A stretch of DNA of 63,624 nucleotides, filler included, from Pelomyxa schiedti (lineage: Eukaryota > Protista > Evosea): assembly GCA_020536535.1 (NCBI GenBank). It is 11 parts of 11 records of this genome, joined end to end, with 100 filler letters (N's around TTAATTAATTAA, not from the genome) between each part and the next. Parts side by side here need not be neighbours in the genome. Positions count along the whole stretch, not along the records: positions 48,064 to 61,151 come from JAHLWZ010001199.1; 10 more parts are not named here. One strand, written 5' to 3'. A program made the position numbers and the translations under genes. This document shows positions 48,064 through 61,151 of this stretch, one piece after another (position 1 is the first letter of the stretch; each line of letters begins with the position of its first letter). Below the pieces are notes generated by a model. It worked only from the letters and a program-made list of their open reading frames with translations. It had not been told where the DNA came from and did not search any database.

Positions 48064-48266
48064 AGGCGCCCAAGAGGAGCAAGAAGATGGACCACGCGCA
48101 CATGCCGGTGTGGTCGTGCTGCGGCCGGCTGTCGCTGTCCCCGGGCTGCGTGTCGCCCGCCCTCGGGGACGAGGTCTACTCCGCCGTGCTCAACGACTGG
48201 TTCTCGCAGTACGGCGACATCATCGACGACATTTGCACTCAGCACAAGAAGCTTATGATGCTGTAG
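48064..48266 (+). CDS. C-terminal fragment with WSCC...PGC (BTK-motif-like) segment
   Basis: HAHMPVWSCCGRLSLSPGCV...KKLMML*; GC-rich codon usage. Confidence 0.45.
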
Positions 48267-48599
48267 AGATGTAGAGTAGTAGTAGTAGTAGTACTAGTAC
48301 TACTCTTTGGTGCAGTGAGAGTGGAATTGAGGCGTTCTGTTAAAATCCTGTTGTTCTTCCAAGCGAACATTTTTAGGAGACTGACTTTTAAGTAAAAGGC
48401 CTTTGTTCCCTGCTTTGTGAGTGCACTTTGCGGAAAATCACAGAAATGGAAAAAAAAATTTCCAGCAGAATACGGCTTCACGCCACGTTCGCATCATGGC
48501 ATTTTAATCGACCTAATGGCAAAACGCCGTTTTGTGAAGTCAAACAAAAAAAAACATTTTGAACAAAGCAGGTGTCTCATTAGATACTAGTGCCATCAA

Positions 48600-49186
48600 A
48601 TGGGCTGTGGAGCAACTGTACCCATGTCGTCGCATTCAGTTCCAACTCGTTCTGTTGGTAATTAATTTTTTTTTTTTCCCTTTGTTTCTCTATCCGCGTG
48701 ACTGTTCAACTCATCCCTGTATGCACACTTAGTTGCAAGAGGAAGTACAAGTTCCAAGATGACTGCCGCACAAGTCAAAAGAGCAACACAGCTCCACATC
48801 GAGTGGCTCACAAAGACAAAAAAAGCCATTCAAACCGCCGAATCCCCAACAGGTTGGCATTTTTCCCACGTTTTTTTCGTTTTTTCTTCCTTACCTTGTG
48901 GTAACTTTCTTTTTTTTCAGCAGAGTGGGACGAACTGAGGAAGATGGTGTCCAATCCCAAGGCATGCGAATTTGGCAAGTGGTTGTACCTCAACCACACC
49001 ACGTGGACCACAGACACGCCGTCCTGGAACCAGGTGCATGACATACACTGCAAGTTCCATTCCGGGGTTGTCAAAGTGCTGGACGTTGCCTGCGGTGACA
49101 CATCGAGGGCTGTGTCGCTGCTATCTGTGGGCGACATTGCGGACATATCCAATGAGCTTATCCAGACTGTGAAGTGCTTGGCATAG
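48600..49186 (+). CDS. Stand-alone CZB (chemoreceptor zinc-binding) domain protein with MGC lipidation motif; exons 48600-48657, 48733-48852, 48921-49186 (147 aa)
   Basis: GT-AG splicing yields MGCGAT...LHIEWL...SNPKACEFGKWLY...VHDIHCKFHSGV, matching the CZB HxxW, CxFGxW and HxxxH motifs. Confidence 0.85.
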
Positions 49187-49386
49187 AGAAGAGCTATTGC
49201 TACTCCACGCTCATGGTGCTCGGAATGGAGAGAGGAATGGAATTTATGTATGTGTAGATAAAGGCGTGGTGGAAGAATACAATTTTGTGCGGCAAGAGAA
49301 AGGAAAAAGGCCTAGCCAACATCTAAATAAAAAATATATTCTATTGTTGAATTCATCCATTTTGTTGTGCTTGAGAATGTACTTGT

Positions 49387-50863
49387 TCAAGGAACCCATT
49401 GGAGAATCGATCCTGATAGGTCCGATTCTGCCTCTGCAGAGGCCCATACGTGGGAGGAATCATACCCATCCACATTCGTAACAATTTGCTGTAAAGTATG
49501 AGTGATGAAATGGTAAGAGGAAACACATACTCCACGAATTTCAAAGCTTGCCCATGCTGCTCCTCCATCAGTTGTGTGTATGAGTTGGCTGCGGTAAAAG
49601 AGTCCATCCTCATAGCCACCTGTGAAACTTTGAGAATTTCATCTACAACATAGAAAGTGCTTACCAACTACCCAGCCTTCAGTCTTTGAAATCATGTACA
49701 TTTTTTTCATGGTTACATCAGGGAGAGTTGCTTGGGTCGCCCAGCTGAGGCCACCATCAATTGTGGCTACGATGAGGCCATGCGCAGCTTGCTCGCCTGC
49801 TGAAATACTGTGAATACAACTCAAACAAAAAAAAAAATCGTTCAGAAACCTTTGGGAACATTTAGAATTGCCCAACCATGCATCGTATCAGTAAAGTAAA
49901 CATCAACAAAATATCCACTGGAAGAAAGAATTAGAGCAGAAATTCGCTGGTAAAACGCATACCCTTCTGTTACATTATATAAGACATCCCAGTCTCGCCC
50001 GCCACTGGTCGTTTTCGCAACAAGTGCTTGGGTCTTAGTGATGTCAGATGATTGGACTCCTCCCACTACCCATCCAACAAGGGAAGAAATGAATGAAGCC
50101 GAGTGTGCTGTAACACCATCAAGTTCCAAAGCATGATTTGTCCACGAAAGACCAGCATCACTGTATCAGTGTTTGCATGTGACATCAAAGGATAGGACGA
50201 TAGAATACGTGGTAACACCGATTCCAGAGCCGCTTCTGAGCAGGGTGTACCATTCGCCAGCACGGACAAAGTATCCAGTGCTACCAATTATGGGTTTTAC
50301 ATCAAACCAGTCTACACGAGGGTAACTATGTCCAGGTTAGATGCACGTTACTTTCTTTATCGAAGCCAACCTCTCGTCAGCAAGGGACCATGTCCCGCCA
50401 CAGTCCTTGCTATACACGCATCCCACAATGCTGTCCTCATGTCAAAAAATAATAGGGAAGAGTTTTTTTTTTTTTTTAAAAAAATTAACAAATTACAAAG
50501 TAACAACAGCAAAACCGGCCAAAATCCACAACAAGACGAAAGGGAAAAAAGAAGAAAAGAGTGACAAAATACACACTTGTCACCGTCGCCGGGCCCGCAA
50601 AGAACAACATCGGAACCGGACATGGCAGAATCCACGAATCGAGTGACTGGCATGGTATCGAATACAATCTGGGTCCAGTTCTTGCCTGATGTGGACGTGG
50701 CCCATAATTCCTCCTCGCCGGCGCTCCAGCCCGCTGTCCCCGCGCTCGGCTGGCAGAACGCCGCCGTTAGCGAGTAGTGACCCACTTCGGATCCCACAAT
50801 CCAGTCCGAGCCGACGCTGGCCCCCAACAAGCACGCCACGACTCCGACCCAAGCCAGAAACAT
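49387..50863 (-). CDS. Secreted BNR/Asp-box beta-propeller (Ycf48-like) protein
   Basis: Signal peptide; TSTSGKNW, KTTSGGRDW, ATIDGGLSW; FTDTMHGWA. Confidence 0.8.
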
Positions 50864-51129
50864 CACTCTTTTTTTATTTTGTTTCTAACTATTGTGATCG
50901 AGATGTAGATGGAGATGTTCTCCTAGCTGCCATTCAGGTTCTGATTTGAGCAGAATGGCACTCCTCTTCAAAGCTTCTACTGTATACAAATGAAGTGAGA
51001 TTCATCACCAACGGAAGCTGGTGTTGATGACTTGAGAAAGGAGCAGGAACATCAACTTCAAAACAACGGCATGCCGGCTTTCAACGAAGCCAGATTCTGT
51101 TTTTTCTTTCAAAAATCAAAAGTCTTTTG

Positions 51130-52298
51130 ATGGCTGCTCGAGCACCGGAGACGTCGTTGGGATACACCAAGATCCAGAGAGAGATTTCGTGTTTGTGTGT
51201 AAATGAGTGGCGCGAAGTGGCGTATGTAGATTGGGTGCCGGCTACGACTGGCGATTCCGGGATCGTCCTATGCGTTCACGGTCTCACGAGAACCAGCTAC
51301 GATTTTGAGCCCTTGGCTAAGTTTCTCGTTTTGGAGTGCAACTTGAGGTATTGCTCTTTTTTATTACCCGTACAAAGGGAACTGTTTCATTTAATTGTAA
51401 ATAGAATTTGGGCGTAGGTTGTAAAAGAACCGTTCTAATTAGGCTTCCAGAGTTGTTTGTGTTGACCTCGTCGGACGAGGAAGAAGTGACTGGCTTTCCG
51501 ACCCAGCCAATTACAACTTGATCATATACGCATCAACTGTTGCAACTCTTATGTCTTCTTTGGGAATAGGCGTCCCTGGTGGATACAAGGATTGCTTGTT
51601 CGTTGGTGACGACGATTATAATAACTCTATCACAAACTGACATTGTCCCAAGGAACATCGTTGGGAGGACTGATTGGAATGGTCCTTGCCTCTGCAAAAC
51701 ACGCTCCGATAAGAAGGCTTTTCATGAACGACATTGGGCCTTACTGCCCCAAAGAGTCTCTCGAATTCCTCAGAGCAATTGTCACCCCACCAAAATTCAA
51801 TGTATGAGTGACCCACGAATATCCTGCAACACTACTAACCTAAGAGGCAGACATTGGAAGATGCTGTCAACTTCCACCGTCAGGTCGCCTGTGTAAGCTG
51901 GGGTCCAATCTCTGACGAACACCTGCTGGATATGATTAAAAATACCATGAAATGTGACCCAACGACTGGTGCGTATACATTTGCTTACGATCCCGAGATA
52001 ACGGCCTCATACAAGGTTTCTCCAGGTCCCCTTTTTAATCACTCCTAATCCTCGCATTCAGGGCCCCATTGTCGACTTGAATTTGTGGTCTTTCTTTGAG
52101 CAAATCAAATGCCCCGTGTTTGTTCTGCACGGAGGCAAGTCTCCACTCCTATCACAGCAAACACTGGACGAAATGCACACCAGGGCCTTAAGTTCCGGAG
52201 TGAACCTGCAGTCCCACACAGTACCTTATGCTGGCCACGTTCCGGCCCTTATTGATGTTGAAGAGATCCGCATTGTGTCCAATTTCCTCACACACTGA
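51130..52298 (+). CDS. Alpha/beta hydrolase, bacterial-like
   Basis: LCVHGLTR, DLVGRGRSDWL, GTSLGG nucleophile elbow, MNDIGP, AYDPEI, AGHVPAL. Confidence 0.92.
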
Positions 52299-52413
52299 GC
52301 TTGCAACACAACAAACAATGCTGTTCATTTCCCAGGGCTAAGAAGAGATAAAAAACTACACAATCAATTTTTGCCGATTTCTTGCTGAATAGATAAATAA
52401 GTGACTGGTGAAC

Positions 52414-55400
52414 TCAAAAAATTCCAGGCAGTGACAATGACGCAGGAGATTGCGATGAAACGGAATTGAGTGTGTTTGTTGGTGGTGAGAACGGCGAGAA
52501 GGGTGCAAATGGCTGACTGAATGGTGAGAAGGGTGCAAAGGGTGCAGATAGTGTGATAGGTGATTGTGGTGGTTCTGGTGATGATGGTGAGGTGCTTTGG
52601 GAAGAATGTGAGGTGGTTGGTGATGATGGTGATTGCGGGAGTGGGTGGTTCACCGCTATGCTTTGTAAGGAATACATTCCAAATGGATTCTGCGGCGGTG
52701 GTTGGTGCGGTGGTTGTTGTTGTTGTGTGTAATTGGTTATAATGGGTGGTGCGGGAGTGTGGGGTGTTTGTTGTAGTGGAGGGGGGCCTGGTGGCCCGGT
52801 TGGGTTGATGGATTTGGTGAGTTGCCGGAGGAGTGAAATGGAGGGTGCCGCTCCCATTGGAGACATTGACATTGACGCTGAAAGGGACATTGGCGAGGAT
52901 TGGGACCGGTGGAGGGAGTTGAAGGAAGGTGTGAAAGGTGTTGGAGGTAATGGTACAGATGTAGGTGGCGGGTTTGGTGTGGGTGTGGGTGTGGGTGTGG
53001 ATGGAGTGCCGGTGGGAAAAGGTGGTGGCGTTGTTTTGGGTGTTGGAGCTGGTGGGGTGGGGGTGCCAGGTGTGGGAATTGTGAGTGTATGGGTAGTGCT
53101 GGTGACAAGTGATTCTGTTGAGGAGGAAGACGAAGATGAAGTGTTAATGTGGGTACTAATACTTTTATCTGTATTTACACTCGTCCTTATGTTTGTGTTG
53201 GAGGTGGATAAATGCGAGGATGAGGTGTGTGATGTCATGGATGTCGAAGTGGTTGTGGAAGGTTGATCATTGCTGATAGGTTGTGTATCATCTGTGGGTG
53301 CAGGGGGTTCCCGCTTATTCGGTGGTTTGTGTTTCGTGGAATCCCCAGATTCAAGTGGTGCACTCTGACAAACTCGACGTAATGTAAAGTTTCCTTTCTG
53401 TATTTCTTTGAGCATAGAGTCCCTCGGACTTTCGTGCTTGGGAGCTTTGGCGTTGGCGGCAACTTTTTTATTTTGGGCTTGCTGCAGGTAAAAGTTACAG
53501 GAAGACCGTTGATTATTGTTCCTACCAATTCTTTGCTTCTCTTTGTGGCTTCTTGTTGCTGCTCTACCAACAATCCCTTGTACGTTTCCTGAAAATGGTA
53601 AGAAGTACAAAAAAAAAAAAGTAACTAATTGCCTGCCACATTGAAGAAAACGTTGCCAATGTAGAGAAAAATTCCGGAATAGTTGTAGGGATTGACGGGT
53701 CTTCTCCAAAGGAAGTAACTATAGAATTTGTTTTTTGTTGTAGATTTTTGAAATCTTCACTCAAGTTTTTGATATTCTCGTCAAACTCTTGGAAGGAACT
53801 CTACTCAGAGGTCAACTGAATTTAGATAGAAAACTCCTAGAACCTCCATCTTGGCTTTGAATACAGGATCTGGTTGTTTTGCTAAGGATGACAGATTCTG
53901 TTGAAGATCCTGTTGTAACTTGCCTATTGTACCGACCATTTCTCCCAAAGGATCTATAATTTTTAGTTTTTGAACTGTTCTGGTGAAAGTGGAAATGAGA
54001 ACCTACACTTGCAACAGTGTGTAAGATGCTTCAATTCACCTGGAAATTTGCTGTGTTCAGGTTTCGTAATGACTACAAGCTTCACTACATATTTCAGGAG
54101 TGTGATAGCAGCATTCACAGGAGACCGTAAATCTTTAAGCTGAAGATTTTAAGAGAAATTCAGAAAACATTGTATGTACCTTCTTTAGGGTCTCAATCTT
54201 GAATCCTGTGGCATTTCCCTGGGGGGTCCCATAATTCATGAAGTTACCACACAATAAAATGACCTTCAGAACCATTTCAGCACGGTACATTGGAAGGAAA
54301 TTGAACGAACGCACTTGCATGACATAGGATAGACCTTTGCAATTGGTAATTTCTTCCATAGCAGTGTTCCATGACTGAATTTTCTTGACGAAGAAAGTGA
54401 GAAGAACATCAGATAATATCATTCTACTGACCTCACTTAGGTCCTGATATTCCGGGAAAAACCGCACTTTAAACAGCAAGGAGAGAACTTTTTCTTGGAA
54501 CATAGGCACACGAGATACCTTGAAACAGGTTAGTGAAGAGCATTTGTTGTGTCCGCTACCTCCCGAAAGAACAACTCAGCCTTAGGAAGTAGGTTTATAT
54601 CTCCCGCGTAGGATGTAATGAGGTCCAGCTAATGCAGTTAGGGAAAAAAGTTTCATTGAGGGAGATTACTTCTTCCTTTGTGGGAGCAAAACTAGAAAGT
54701 GTCTGCAAGTTTTCTACAGAAAGTTCTTCTGAGGCATCATTCACAGCATCAATAATTTGTTGTTGTGTCATGTTCTTAAATTGACTGAGTCCAATGGATA
54801 CATTGTTTGATCTCTTCGTGTCCAAAAGGAGGAGGAATTTAGGTTTACTAGCTGGCTTCGGCTCAACAACCACCACTTTGGGATTTTGAGGGAAAAGTTC
54901 CTCCATTTCCTCTAGTGGGATGATCTAGGTTGAATTAAAAGATTGGTATAAATCAAAGTTATGTACCTTCGAATCCACAACTTCCCTCTATTTGAATAGA
55001 TAAGAAAGAGGAACAAAATCTGGTTATATACCTTGACCCACATTGTATTGTTCACATTTGAGAGTTTGAGCCACTGGAAAAAAATCAACCATTTAAAAAA
55101 AAAAAAAGGGAAGTACAAAAAATTGTCGCAATTTCACCCTTGGTGCAGGTCCAGAATATGCTGATTTACAATTAGTGGGAAGGTTACTATGTTGTGAGTA
55201 CCATCTGCACCAGGTGTGTTGCGCCAGCTTCGGCCTCTTCCGCCTGGTGGAGGAGGTGGAGGAGGGGTTGCACCAGGTAGTGGTGGTGCAGGGGGGACTG
55301 GTGAAGGTGGTGGATTGTTGTTTGGATCAGCTTCACCACTCCCCCTTAGGGGAGTATGGGGGCAGACCGCTTCTCTTGAGCCACTTTCTCTGAGATTTCC

Positions 55401-57080
55401 AATATTGGCCATTGAACTCCCACGGAGAGGTGTGGCAGAAGGGGAACAGGGTGGTGGAGGGGCAGGGGGTGGTGGAGGCGGTGGGGGACTGGCTTGATGA
55501 CAGTGTGACCTTTCGTCTTCAGCATGCTGTTTCTTCAGTATTTCAGAGAGTTCAGTTATGCTTAACTTGTACTCTAAGAGATAATTACTAAAATTAATTA
55601 TGCAAAAAAAGAAGATAACCTTGATTTTTGGTGTCTTCACTTTTGATATCAAGTGCACGATGGAAAATTTTCTCAATAAATTCCCAGGGAAATCTATTTC
55701 ATTATGAAATTAGAAACCAAGTGGCATGCGTACTGTGAGGAATTCTCTGAAAGAAGTAACATGTGCCGCAGAATGTTGAGAATGGATGAAATGTGGGGGG
55801 TTCCCTTGAGACGTAACAGCACAATTTTAAACACGGCCTCAGGATCACTACACAAATTGCATGTAAATTTTTATTTTGTGCGTTTTTTGGGAAGTCAAAA
55901 ACCTCAGATCTAGGTTGTGACAAGCTTGAATTTCCTCAATCTTTTTGCGGTCATGATCCATTTGCAGGAGAAATGCCTCTATTTGCTTTTGAATGTCCGG
56001 ATTGGTTTCAAATTTCTTCTGAACAATCTGTTCTGACCCAGAATGGGAGTCTATAAGTATGCTAGAGCACATTAATGTGAAGTTAAAGGCACACCATAAG
56101 GGTATCATTAAACGCCAAATCTACAAAGAGAGTACGAATGGAGATTCTTTCCTCCAGATCGGCAGGTGAATTGACAAGGGTGTTAATGAATGCAATGCAA
56201 GACCACTATGTGTAATACTGTGAATTTAAGCAACCAAGACGAAAAATCTCACAGTCAATTGATCATCAAATGACTCATTTGCCCATGTGCACAGCATCTT
56301 AAAGGTTTTTGTAGAAGAATCTGTGATGTCACGTGTGGCAGTGAGCATGGCCCTTATATCCCTTTTTAAAAATAGATTTCAAATAGGAAGGTGACATACT
56401 GACGTGCCTCTGGAGAGGAAAGCGTTATAACAGAAAATATTTGCAGTATTTGTGACCGAACAAGTAAGTTAGATGTCCTGGATACAGTATCAAGCATTCT
56501 CTGAAGTAGTGATTTGTGCTGAGCAACTAACAGCTCAATTGATTCCTAGAAGTGTTTTGGATAATAAAATGGCAGTTGTCATACTTTAGATGATAACAAG
56601 CTTTTTAAGCATAGAATGAGGTGGCATTGGCATGAAGCGTGTGCAAAATGAAATGTCCTGTAATTGAATGAAAAACTGAAGGCCACTGAGGGGAAAAACT
56701 TTTTATCAAATCTCTGAATAGCACGGATGATAGCATTTAAGCCATCACTTTGAATGAACATATCAGTCCAATCTCTATTTCCAGAGTTAAGGAAAGAGTT
56801 AAACATGACACGCAACTGCTGGACCTTGGAGAGCTATCAATTTTTTCCCTCAGTTGAAGGAGAAGAGAGGCAGGGTAGTGCTTCTTTTCCAAAACATTCA
56901 GTAATGTTACAACATCAAGAGGTGATTCTGGCAGTTCTCGTGTTGGTAGTGGGTGCCTCTTTGCTAGCACCTTGGTTCCCTTGCTCCTTCTCCTTTTCCC
57001 CCACGTAAAAAATTGGTAGTGGGGAGGGAGTAAACACATACTTGACTCGTGGGGACTCAGAACCAGCAGAGACAACCTTT
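52414..57080 (-). CDS. Formin (GBD/FH3-FH1-FH2) with WH2-like motif and Pro/Ser-rich tail; start uncertain
   Basis: Poly-Pro FH1; LLDTKRSNNVSIGLSQF; ILLCGNFMNYG...ATGFKIETL; SFGEDP...EFFSTL; RDSMLKEIQKGNFTLRRV. Confidence 0.92.
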
Positions 57081-57649
57081 GGATTGTTATTTTTGTTTTT
57101 AGATACAGCAAGCAAAACAAAACAGAACAAAAAAAATCAATAAAACAAAGGGGGGACTGAAACAGCGTAGTGACAGAAACTTGCAAGGAAGAAGCAACTT
57201 GGCACGGCTCGGGGAACAAAAAAACAAACAAACAAAAAAAAAAAAAAAAAGTTCCCCCAACAATGAAACGCAGGTGGCGCTTTTTCAACGAATCACACAC
57301 GCACCCTGTCGTTGTCCATTTCGCTTGTCTCGTAACACACACACCCCTCGTGTGCACTGTCACCTCGGTTGCTTCTCGCCGTATTTCCGATACGATATTT
57401 TCGATAATGTCTCGGTGTTCTCTTTTGCTGTAGTTTCCTCCACTTTTTTTCTCGAATTTGGCTCATTGATGTTTAAACAAAAAGCTTGATTTGATTGTTC
57501 CTAGAAAAAAGACAAAAACGAGAAGAAACCCAACCCAGAAGTGAAGATTCACAAAAAATAATCTTTTTATTGTCCTTTCCCCCCAAAGTCGTTTAGGGGG
57601 ACACTACACAACGGAAAAAAAAACATTCACATAGGAAGGGAGCGCACGC

Positions 57650-60559
57650 TCAAGTGTGCTTGGCCATCTCATTGAGAGCACTTCCGGCACGGAACCACTG
57701 TGCTTGTACTTCATTGAAGGTGTTGTTGAGCTGTAAAGGTGGTTTGTTGTGAGAACCGGGTGGAAACGGGTTGGTTGTTTACCTGAATATCAAACGGTGC
57801 GGAGCCGTCGGCTGGCTTCACGTGGAGGGTAAGGGGTTTCCCTGACCCAAGGGTTTCCAGGCCAACAATGCTGACTTTGTCGTCGCCTCTGAAACATGCA
57901 GGTTAATTGTTGGGTAAAGGTAGAAATAACGAAGCACACGTTAGTCTGTTGTAGTCATCGGGGTTGGCGAACGTGAGTGGAAGGACACCCTGCTTTTTAA
58001 GGTTGGACTCGTGAATGCGAGCGAAACTCTTCACGATGATTGCGACTGCACCAAGATGGCGGGGCTAAAAGTGGTGATAAGAACTTTGTTGTCAAAGGAA
58101 AGTCAGATATACCTCCAAGGCTGCGTGTTCGCGGCTGCTGCCTTCACCGTAGTTGGTGTCACCTATGGCAACCCATCTGATTCCCCTGCTCTTGTAGAAT
58201 CGAGCAACATTGGGCACGGTATCAAACTCCCCCGTGACATGATTCTTAACCAAGTTTTGTTTCATGTTCATTGAATTTACGGCACCTAATATATGTTAAG
58301 TCTGCACAATACTTCAGGTCCACTCACCAATGAGCATGTTGTTAGAGATATTATCAAGGTGTCCTCTGTACTTTAGCCAAACACCAGCAGCGCTGATGTG
58401 ATCAGTTGTGCACTTGCCCCTGACTTTGATCAAAATTGGCAAATCAGCAAACGCTTCTGGTCGGACATTCTCCCATGGTTCGAATGGAGACAGCCTCTGA
58501 AGCCTATCGCTTGTGGGGCTAATGACTACAGTAACAGAATCGCCGTCTACAGCGGGTGGCTCGTAGACAGCGGCTGTAGTGGAGGAATCGTAGCCATGTG
58601 GTGGAAGGTCCATCCCAGTGGGTGGCGCAAGTCTCCATGGACCAGTAGGTGACTCTAGTTCATCGCGGGCTGGATGGAAACGAAGAGTACCAGCAAGGCC
58701 AAGGGCGACAACTATCTGCAAGAAGAGTGAGGGATTTTGGAAAAGAAAGCGTTGCATACCTCTGGAGAGGTTACAAAGGCCATGGTTTCGGCATTTCCGT
58801 CGGCACGAGCGGAAAAGTTTCTGTTATAGGAGTGCACAATTGTGTTCTTTCCAGAGGTTACATCTGTTCTCTTCCACTGCCCAATGCAAGGTCCACATGC
58901 ATTGGCCAAAACAACACCGCCGACTGCTGTGAATAGATCTTCAAGTCCATCTCTCTTCATTGTAGCCCTAAAACAAGAATAAGGGGATAAAGACACAAAG
59001 CACAGCAGTTACCTCACTTGTTCAGAGCCAGGAGAGATGTAGAACTTTGCCTTCATCTTGATACCATGATCAAGGGCTTGCTTGCATACATTAGCTGCCC
59101 TTGTCAAGTCTTCGTAACTGCTGTTAGTGCAGCTGCCAATCAAGGCAGCGCTAACATCGAGAGGCCATCCATTGGCCTCTGCAGCAGCGCTAACGGCAGA
59201 GAGAAGGTGATTACGGTCAGGTGAAAGAGGACCGTTAATCTGGGGTTCGAGAGTGGAAAGATCCAACTCGACTACTTTGTCGTAAATTGTCTGAAAGGTG
59301 TGGCTGAGAACAGGAGGGAGATGTCATATATGTACCTCATCTGCAGAATCTGCTCTGAGGAGCTCGGCAAACTGTTCAGCGAGAGCGGCAATTTCTTCTC
59401 GACCAGTGGCTCTAAGGTATTCCGCTTGCCTTCTGGTGAACGGGAAAATGGAACCTGTGGCACCAAGCTCGGCACCCATGTTACAGATGGTGGCTGCTCC
59501 CGTGCAAGAAATGGATTCAGCACCAGGACCAAAGTATTCAATAATAAATCCTGTGCCTCCCTCGACGGATAAGCGACCAGCGAGTGCAAGAATAACATCT
59601 TTTGGTGCTGTCCAACCTTTGGGAGGGTTATCGAACCAAGAATCTTGGACGGACTCCCTACCAGAAAGTGCGCCAGTTAGCTTCACTCCCAAAACTTTAG
59701 GCGCTTTAAGCTCCAGCGCCAACCCAGCCATTACATCAACAGCATCTGCACCGCCTACACCAACTGCAAGCATTCCCAAACCTCCAGCATTTGGAGTGTC
59801 TAAAGAACATTAATTCATAACCTCAAGGAAATAGTCATACGGCTGTCAGTTCCAATGACCATTCCTCCAGGGAATGCATAATTTTCCAGAACAATCTGGG
59901 AAAGATGTCACAACAAAAGAGGGTAAGTGTGAAATTGTCACCTGATGGATAATTCCACTGCCGGGTTTCCAGAATCCCATACCGTATTTATTAGCAGCAC
60001 TTCGGAGGAAGTCGTAGACTTCTTTGTTGACTGTGCATGCAGCAGCAAGATCGGAAACAGCTCCTTTATCTTGAGCTTGAATCAAGTGGTCACAGTGAAC
60101 CGTTGAGGGCACTGCGGTCCTCTTCATTCCAGATGACATAAATTGAAGAACTGAAAGGAAACATGAACAATTTACAGATAGAACGGGAGACACTGACTGG
60201 CCATTTGAGCGGTGGCATCTTGCATGGCAACACGGTCGGGTTTAAGGTACAAGTAACTCTTTCCCTTTATGTACTAGAAGGGGGGCGGGTGAGAAACATA
60301 GAACACTCCAAAGGAAGAAAAAAAAAAGTGCGCACTTCTTGATGGACATCCTCGAGATGTGAGACAATGACCTTCTCTGCGAGAGTCATAGGAGCCGTGT
60401 GTGTGCGGCGGAACTCCTGCACCACATTATTAATACGAGGGGGGGAAAAAAAAACCCAATAGAGATCTTGCACACAGCAATAACGGCAGCCATGCGTGGG
60501 TAATCCACAAACACATTTGCGTCGAACTTGCTTATCGGTACTCGTGCTGTTGCAGCCAT
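57650..60559 (-). CDS. ACO2: Aconitate hydratase, mitochondrial (ACO2)-type, many exons
   Basis: [69 protein letters not shown]. Confidence 0.97.
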
Positions 60560-60974
60560 CTGATGGTCGTCACTCCGCCTTGTCTCCTTGTTTTTTTGTT
60601 TATTATTTCGACGTTTTTTCGTCGTTTGTTAAATAGACAGATCGGCGCCGAAAGGAAAAAAATTGTGGAAGCTGCCGAACATATAGAGGAAGCTCGTCCA
60701 TTTTTCTCCTTTCCTATCAGTGGACTGATTGGAATTTCAGAGGAATTTATTCATGATTGAGGAGGGCAGGGTAATCCAGATGCTGCACCACACATCGTTT
60801 TTATGATTGCATCCCCGTTCAGATTGGGCTCCTCCACTCCAATTATCGACAAGAGTAATTTCCTCTGACACAATCAGATAACTGTGAAAAGTGAATAAAT
60901 AATTAACAACAAACAAACCAAAAAAAAAACACACACCCACCGCCGCACACAGATCTACCCCGAATAAGCGACAA

Positions 60975-61151
60975 ATGACGTCGGGAGGACCAAACGCGTC
61001 CGCGAATGGTAGTGCGTCTTCCGTTGGAGTAATGCCGATGGTGCAAGGAATGGGCGGAATGGGGATGCCCGGGATGGTAGGAATGTCACCCCCCGCAATG
61101 CCTGGAATGCTCGGGATGCCTTCTCCAGCGATGTACATGGCGCCCGGCGGA
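60975..61151 (+). CDS. Met/Pro/Gly-rich N-terminal fragment
   Basis: MTSGGPN...MGMPGMVGM running into spacer. Confidence 0.45.

Follow-up and report, generated by a model that had tools for sequence, protein, structure and literature searches.

Has an anaerobic amoeba taken a bacterial zinc-binding sensory module into its own genome? The question arises from a short gene of Pelomyxa schiedti (assembly GCA_020536535.1) located at positions 48600–49186 (+) of the DNA analyzed here, a stretch of 63,624 nucleotides (nt) composed of 11 parts of this genome joined end to end, which we call the window. Positions 48064–61151 of the window, in which the gene lies, are one 13,088-bp contig (JAHLWZ010001199.1). 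The gene product, Pelo_16838, consists of a short N-terminal extension beginning MGCGA followed by a single CZB (chemoreceptor zinc-binding) domain. A survey of 10,140 CZB sequences found essentially all of them to be bacterial, and the lone eukaryotic one, from a nematode, was judged to be probable contamination (PMC8262984). Our literature search returned no paper linking CZB with amoebae. The reading that we favor, with somewhat more confidence than doubt, is that the nuclear gene Pelo_16838 is functional and encodes a CZB domain that stands alone, that it derives from a laterally acquired bacterial CZB-only gene, and that it acts by the mechanism laid out below.

The 147-residue product (444 nt including the stop codon) is encoded by three exons separated by two GT..AG introns. 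Exon 1 (48600–48657, +) comprises 58 nt, i.e., codons 1–19 plus 1 nt, and its first 15 nt specify MGCGA. Intron 1 (48658–48732, +; 75 nt, GTAATT..TTAG, phase 1) is T-rich. Exon 2 (48733–48852, +; 120 nt) encodes the end of a disordered linker and helix 1. It contains an in-frame ATG specifying Met28 (48759–48761, +) and the CAC codon (48795–48797, +) for His41, the first zinc ligand, which belongs to the HxxW motif. Intron 2 (48853–48920, +; 68 nt, GTTGGC..TCAG) is likewise in phase 1. Exon 3 (48921–49186, +; 266 nt including the TAG at 49184–49186) carries the C-terminal helices, and it specifies Cys75 within CEFGKWL (TGC, 48965–48967, +) together with His102 and His106 of the HxxxH motif (49046–49048 and 49058–49060, +). 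The start ATG is preceded by A at −3 and followed by G at +4. Four codons upstream, an in-frame TAG (48588–48590, +), read from the sequence, closes the frame 5′ of the start.

This arrangement had been proposed in an earlier note on the same DNA, and its coordinates, its two introns, and its 147-residue in-frame protein are borne out by the sequence, by the database, and by transcripts. Specifically, the spliced product is identical, residue for residue, to the GenBank entry “hypothetical protein Pelo_16838 [Pelomyxa schiedti],” the description in GenBank being merely “hypothetical protein.” When one- and two-intron GT/GC..AG models of 48600–49186 were compared by script with the GenBank protein, only this splice model fit. 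The exon with the first histidine is, as the note had remarked of the open reading frame (ORF) track, missing in that frame: the listed ORFs of 60 amino acids (aa) or more do not include it. Full-length searches used the database protein Pelo_16838 (P0001) as the query, and exons were searched separately; the exon 3 query retrieved Pelo_16838, 147 aa, covering the exon at 100% identity.

The RNA evidence consists of contigs assembled from three single-cell RNA-seq runs, which derive from the study that produced the genome and are not independent material. RNA contig X1 (579 nt) aligns to 48621–48656, 48732–48849, and 48918–49342, skipping 75 and 68 nt with GT..AG ends. Both predicted introns are thereby absent from the transcript exactly as modeled, and intron 2 is also removed in a second RNA contig, X2. 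The acceptor of intron 2 is a tandem CAG|CAG (NAGNAG) at 48918–48923, use of whose second AG would drop Ala60; the first AG is used in both RNA contigs. X1 ends 11 nt past an AATAAA hexamer (49326–49331), which suggests a 3′ untranslated region (UTR) of about 156 nt at 49187–49342 (+), with 49342 as the apparent poly(A) site. The RNA shows a single variant, T>C at 49096, which changes GGT into GGC and is synonymous.

The assignment of the protein to the CZB family comes from profile searches and from the conservation of the zinc ligands. Residues 41–112 match positions 1–63 of the 64 in the Pfam CZB profile (PF13682) at 39.9 bits, exceeding the gathering threshold of 29.4, with an E value of 5.5e-10. 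Exon 3 by itself scores 29.2 bits against the same profile; exon 2 by itself, which is too short to score, had no meaningful match in Pfam. In NCBIfam, the DgcZ equivalog was reached at a subthreshold 12.9 bits. Run exhaustively over 1.84 billion cluster representatives, phmmer yielded 76 matches at E ≤ 0.001, and 74 sequences were aligned. His41, Cys75, His102, and His106 are the sole invariant columns of the alignment. The claim that the CZB domain stands alone and retains each of its four zinc ligands is supported. In addition, Trp44, Leu48, Gly78, Trp80, and Phe105 are kept in at least 90% of the 74 aligned relatives, and the helix-3 motif C-x-[LF]-G-x-W-[LI] is present as C75-E-F-G-K-W-L. 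All 30 matches of an ESM-Atlas feature search were CZB clusters, every one of them from Bacteria.

A bacterial protein for comparison is the diguanylate cyclase DgcZ of E. coli, whose CZB domain is represented by the PDB entries 3T9O and 4H54. The family profile built from the 74-sequence alignment matches 3T9O at an E value of 4.6e-8, and the HxxW, CxFGxW, and HxxxH motifs align with the zinc-ligand motifs of DgcZ. Roles in zinc binding have been reported for His22 and Cys52 of DgcZ (PMC8262984). The other two DgcZ ligands in this comparison are His79 and His83. A phmmer search of the whole of Pelo_16838 against PDB sequences gave no DgcZ match at E < 10; arenavirus GP2 and hydroxyacid oxidase, which it did return, are weak chance matches (E 0.04–1.2).

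Does the predicted fold speak as clearly as the profile? An AlphaFold2 model computed from the 74-sequence alignment (predicted local distance difference test score, pLDDT, 87.4; predicted template modeling score, pTM, 0.75) leaves residues 1–30 unstructured and places helices at 31–54, 60–70, 76–86, 93–116, 120–128, and 131–144, with a short helical turn just before Cys75. The helix count is similar to that of 3T9O: six helices of at least four residues by DSSP, plus the short one before the cysteine, in the model, and five plus a 3-10 helix in the crystal structure. The model superposes on chain B of 3T9O (3t9o_B) with a Z score of 10.3 and a root-mean-square deviation of 3.5 Å over 112 of 120 residues, at rank 7. 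The structural searches nonetheless do not single out CZB: the superposition scores level with those on many unrelated four-helix-bundle sensor domains, and a Foldseek search of the PDB returned nothing at E ≤ 0.001, its best entry being the middle domain of DosC, a generic helical bundle. The modeled fold is compatible with CZB but does not discriminate. Membership in the family is founded on the profile and the ligands, not on the fold.

Where did such a domain come from? Names were looked up for 29 of the 76 matches, the query excluded, and most of the 29 were without a name. Among these 29, the eukaryotic ones are two Pelomyxa proteins and one Mastigamoeba protein only; all other nameable matches are bacterial, from Candidatus Parabeggiatoa, Sulfuritalea, and gammaproteobacterial metagenome-assembled genomes, and two further nameless matches sit in compact gene arrays of prokaryotic type. 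Further profile searches added a single protein, also from Mastigamoeba. Mastigamoeba balamuthi possesses two adjacent CZB genes, m51a1_g2303 (P0006, 254 aa) and m51a1_g2302 (P0086, 179 aa). The m51a1_g2303 product consists of two nearly identical CZB halves, and its gene spans about 2 kb for 255 codons, which points either to introns or to a gene-caller fusion of tandem copies. The ten best matches from outside the Archamoebae are 26–42% identical over the domain. Metagenome scans with Pelo_16838 and with an alignment of the three Pelomyxa paralogs found no close relatives.

Lateral transfers into Archamoebae are common. Because CZB proteins elsewhere are bacterial, the gene is most naturally read as having been acquired laterally and having gained introns afterward. 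This reading is supported, too, by the narrow eukaryotic group in which the copies occur and by their host-type introns, neighbors, and transcripts. When the transfer took place is a separate matter. Maximum-likelihood trees were built from 74 rows and 124 columns; their branches are long, and the nearest bacterial rows are mostly metagenomic proteins. The Pelomyxa trio forms a supported clade (99/95), as does the Mastigamoeba trio (100/100). In a quick tree the two genera are joined, with a Shimodaira–Hasegawa approximate likelihood ratio test (SH-aLRT) value of 61. In the careful free tree, the Archamoebae are not one clade, and they come together in 20% of bootstrap trees. A tree constrained to hold them together is 2.24 log-likelihood (lnL) units better than the free tree, with a P value of 0.53 in the approximately unbiased test (p-AU). 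A single acquisition in the archamoebal ancestor is possibly the correct history; it is not rejected, and it gives the marginally best tree for these sequences. The transfer would have preceded the growth of the Pelomyxa family to three members, and it may have occurred in the common ancestor with Mastigamoeba.

CZB-only proteins make up 27.1% of the 10,140 surveyed CZB sequences (those with PF13682 as their only domain; PMC8262984), and most of the closest bacterial matches are 117–130 aa long. Bacterial CZB-only proteins such as P0007, P0009, and P0011 are, like Pelo_16838, one bundle of about 115–130 aa with no output domain, and they possess the same ligands, three histidines and one cysteine, as well as the CxFGxW and HxxxH motifs. 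Double-CZB proteins also exist, in Ca. Parabeggiatoa (P0004) and Sulfuritalea (P0014). The earlier note had spoken of a domesticated sensor with no output domain. The idea that this lack reflects domestication is not supported: because CZB-only proteins are common in bacteria and the closest matches are short, the absence of an output domain was probably inherited from a CZB-only donor. What distinguishes Pelo_16838 from the bacterial CZB-only proteins is its spliceosomal introns, its eukaryotic setting, and a disordered 30-residue extension that starts with MGCGA.

Within Pelomyxa, the gene is a member of a family of three. The top two matches after the query are the Pelomyxa proteins Pelo_15370 (P0002, 143 aa, E 1.3e-15) and Pelo_10333 (P0003, 135 aa). 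Their genes reside on contigs of 29.7 and 167 kb, respectively, among genes for Ras/Roc GTPases, Yip1, ATG8, Rer1, PUF, and kinases. Each of the two paralogs adjoins a TMEM33/Pom33-family gene (294 and 287 aa; L001 3096–4438 and L002 3349–4613), an arrangement suggesting that the two genes were duplicated together as one segment. The CZB gene at 48600–49186 has no TMEM33/Pom33 neighbor. Both Pelo_15370 and Pelo_10333 contain three GT..AG introns. In the paralogs, intron 2 interrupts the codon preceding W-D-D, in phase 1; in the window gene, it has the same phase and lies one codon earlier, and splicing to the second AG of CAG|CAG would place it in exactly the same codon. The match in place and phase means that intron 2 most likely predates the split between the paralogs. 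Intron 1 occupies a similar place in a different phase, inside a linker that cannot be aligned, and intron 3 of the paralogs is not present in the window gene. Between the paralogs, the proportion of synonymous differences (pS) is 0.76–0.80, which is saturation, and the proportion of nonsynonymous differences (pN) is 0.31–0.49. The ratio dN/dS is not computable at saturated synonymous sites, so the statement is limited to pN being well below pS. By this measure, the copies are old and retained.

A second sample provides a further comparison. A DNA-like contig from it, X4 (12,296 nt, 95–99% alike), which belongs to the same study, differs from the window at 8 substituted positions and 7 indel places within 48300–48716, all of them 5′ of the ATG or inside intron 1, and at none of the 444 coding nucleotides or in the 3′ flank. 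X4 is weak evidence of constraint, since the differences cluster and the 3′ flank is likewise unchanged. X4 may represent a different allele, a different cell, or a strain related to this one.

How, then, might the protein work? By analogy with its bacterial relatives, Pelo_16838 would bind zinc: residues 31–144 would form a helical bundle holding one Zn2+ via His41, Cys75, His102, and His106. The family pattern established in DgcZ and TlpD work predicts a homodimer formed through helix 1, with one Zn2+ per protomer (PMC8262984). As in bacterial CZB domains, the Cys75 region would switch between order and disorder according to whether zinc is bound and to the state of the thiolate that binds it, such that loss of zinc or modification of the thiolate would disorder the segment around the cysteine and alter the bundle. 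At the N-terminus, Gly2 would be myristoylated and Cys3 palmitoylated, and the flexible linker of about 30 residues would tether the bundle to a membrane on its cytosolic side. Lacking a fused output domain, the protein would act via protein partners, or through local zinc binding or buffering. The input would be labile zinc or a thiol-reactive oxidant. Stated in full, the notion is that a bacterial sensor module now serves eukaryotic membrane signaling, in which a dually acylated Zn2+/thiol switch sits on the cytosolic face of plasma, phagosomal, or symbiont-containing membranes and reports labile zinc or oxidant to eukaryotic partners. We advance this fuller picture tentatively, as a possibility to which we give less than even credence.

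The argument for a tether comes from the N-terminus. The earlier note had pointed to an MGC start; it is present, and it is conserved as MGCGA in all three Pelomyxa paralogs, while the next 30 or so alignment columns contain no invariant residue. The MGCGA codons differ synonymously between the paralogs (GGC or GGT for Gly2, GGA or GGT for Gly4). Thus, the motif is conserved at the protein level and is not the trace of a recent copy. An invariant MGCGA ahead of a variable, predicted disordered stretch argues for selection on a putative myristoylation/palmitoylation motif. The pattern for N-myristoylation (PROSITE PS00008) calls for Gly2, a tolerated residue at position 3, a residue at position 6 that is small or bears a hydroxyl group, and no Pro at 7, and Cys3 is the classical palmitoylation partner of Gly2. 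M-G-C-G-A-T-V in Pelo_16838 and M-G-C-G-A-T-T in Pelo_15370 fit this pattern, with Gly2 and Thr6. From the motif, Pelo_16838 would be a candidate for lipidation. The same design is familiar from the Src-family kinases Lck and Fyn and from G-alpha-i/o, which combine a Met-Gly-Cys start, a small or hydroxyl residue 6, and a flexible linker with dual acylation. Those dually acylated signaling proteins carry a kinase or a GTPase, whereas Pelo_16838 carries what is predicted to be a zinc-binding bundle of bacterial type. Two other N- or C-terminal signals were considered and rejected. There is no hydrophobic stretch at the N-terminus that would serve as a signal peptide, and, for CaaX prenylation, the Cys stands at −3 in Pelo_16838 (..KCLA), stands at −2 in Pelo_15370, and is absent in Pelo_10333.

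Several observations weigh against the tether. Pelo_10333 begins M-G-C-G-A-P-A, and Pro6 departs from what is usual for myristoylation. The two Mastigamoeba proteins begin MGIQSP and MVSALP, not MGC, and so MGCGA appears to be a Pelomyxa addition. Moreover, no RNA contig covers 48600–48620, leaving the ATG and codons 1–7 uncovered, and RNA contig X2 starts at 48690, within intron 1, after 16 nt that resemble the end of a template-switch oligo (SMART). The X2 start may represent an alternative 5′ end or an unspliced fragment. A transcript with such a 5′ end would be translated from the next in-frame ATG, that of Met28, to give an anchorless protein of 120 aa.

These same points make the case for the rival that survives best, namely a soluble, cytosolic CZB-only protein, in which either the MGC start is not lipidated or translation begins at Met28, and which binds or buffers zinc or binds partners with no tether. 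That its bacterial relatives are mostly 117–130 aa long fits well with a 120-aa form. Set against it is the invariance of MGCGA across paralogs whose synonymous sites are saturated, with the following 30 or so residues free to vary. Moreover, X1 is spliced over intron 1 and contains exon 1 from 48621, a lone contig start in an intron may be an unspliced fragment, and a small ATG–stop at 48721–48729 would come before Met28 in an X2-type transcript. The annotated methionine draws support from the upstream in-frame stop, from the good ATG context, from MGCGA in the three paralogs, and from X1, spliced from 48621. We consider the soluble form rather doubtful, if a serious contender.

A different objection concerns the input. 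Could the protein, for the earlier note a candidate Zn2+/HOCl sensor, be specifically a sensor of hypochlorous acid (HOCl; bleach), as shown for DgcZ and TlpD, with Cys75 oxidized to sulfenic acid and zinc released? The zinc-binding cysteine and the CxFGxW motif, which are HOCl reactive in DgcZ, are conserved (PMC8262984). Helicobacter pylori TlpD and other soluble CZB chemoreceptors share the module, and their zinc-thiolate cysteine is the proposed redox/HOCl switch. However, PMC10579272 describes P. schiedti as an anaerobe in consortium with methanogens and syntrophic bacteria, a setting in which HOCl is not expected. HOCl is also only one of several known CZB inputs, and the authors of PMC8262984 hold zinc binding to be ancestral and HOCl sensing to be a later adaptation to animal hosts. 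HOCl sensing is improbable in an anaerobic sediment amoeba, for which labile zinc or another thiol-reactive oxidant would be the more plausible input. In DgcZ, the CZB domain is joined to a GGDEF output domain and, with zinc bound, inhibits it; Pelo_16838 has no output domain. In TlpD, CZB lies C-terminal to a methyl-accepting signaling domain that feeds CheA/CheW, and such machinery is not expected in an amoeba.

Less probable still is the proposal that the N-terminal 30 residues are a presequence for the mitochondrion-related organelle. The segment is rich in Ser, Thr, Arg, Ala, and Val, it has no acidic residue before Glu43, and it is disordered in the model, features that speak for a presequence. 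However, acidic residues occur early in the paralogs (Glu31 in Pelo_15370 and Glu20 in Pelo_10333), only MGCGA is shared, and the shared motif counts against a presequence because a presequence would not require it. A weak further point is that the gene names are absent from two supplementary files of the Pelomyxa organelle-proteome paper. We regard this proposal as very improbable.

Finally, the suspicion that the gene is bacterial contamination, a misassembly, or a dead relic (a CZB gene of an endosymbiont or prey, or a decaying fragment), invited by a genome obtained through single-cell amplification of a symbiont-filled amoeba (PMC8887013 and PMC10579272) and by the nematode precedent (PMC8262984), is refuted for practical purposes by two spliceosomal introns removed in transcripts, eukaryotic neighbors on the same contig, two three-intron paralogs on large eukaryotic contigs, a best bacterial identity of only about 30–40%, a frame and ligands intact in all copies despite saturated synonymous divergence, and a second DNA contig, X4, none of whose 15 differences falls in the coding exons.

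The neighboring genes merit a brief description. Genes encoding a formin and an aconitase lie on the same contig, both on the minus strand and both broken into exon-sized ORFs. The formin gene (54138–55676, −) has FH2 pieces at 54138–54509 and 54598–54906 and a poly-proline, FH1-like stretch in the ORF at 55134–55676. The aconitase gene (58317–60473, −), which comprises several exon-sized ORFs, matches Aconitase at 138.6 bits at 59327–59779 and Aconitase_C at 58317–58757. With spliced transcripts and these intron-bearing neighbors, the gene is, as the earlier note had it, an intron-containing gene of a eukaryote, the amoeba. Between the formin gene and the CZB gene, an ORF of 431 aa (52414–53709, −) is rich in Ser, Thr, and Pro, has a strong GC skew (0.69 at 52564–53063), and is a low-complexity protein or exon. 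Immediately downstream of the CZB gene is a convergent gene (49353–50866, −) made of several exon-sized ORFs, with a stop near 49353. Some 10 nt separate its 3′ end from the position at which the CZB gene is apparently polyadenylated, and two pieces of it searched against Pfam gave no match. Upstream, the GC-rich 3′ end of another gene (48064–48266, +; stop at 48264–48266) is truncated where the contig ends. The 3′ UTR of this upstream gene is covered to 48361 by an RNA contig (X2 record 2), which indicates a transcript separate from that of the CZB gene.

Here, we have described a CZB gene family that is clearly eukaryotic, with introns, transcripts, three old and constrained paralogs, and relatives in a second archamoebal genus. 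Its existence contradicts the published view of CZB as confined to bacteria. A prokaryotic sensory module has been kept by a eukaryote with no usual output domain, and a new, conserved motif of lipidation type has been added to it. The family offers a simple system for asking what role is played by output-less CZB proteins, which constitute about a quarter of all CZB proteins. A related question is how zinc or oxidants are sensed in anaerobic amoebae that bear endosymbionts. If the proposed membrane switch is true, eukaryotes would have, in the Pelomyxa proteins, their first functional family of CZB sensors, and these proteins would provide a route to the function of CZB-only proteins.

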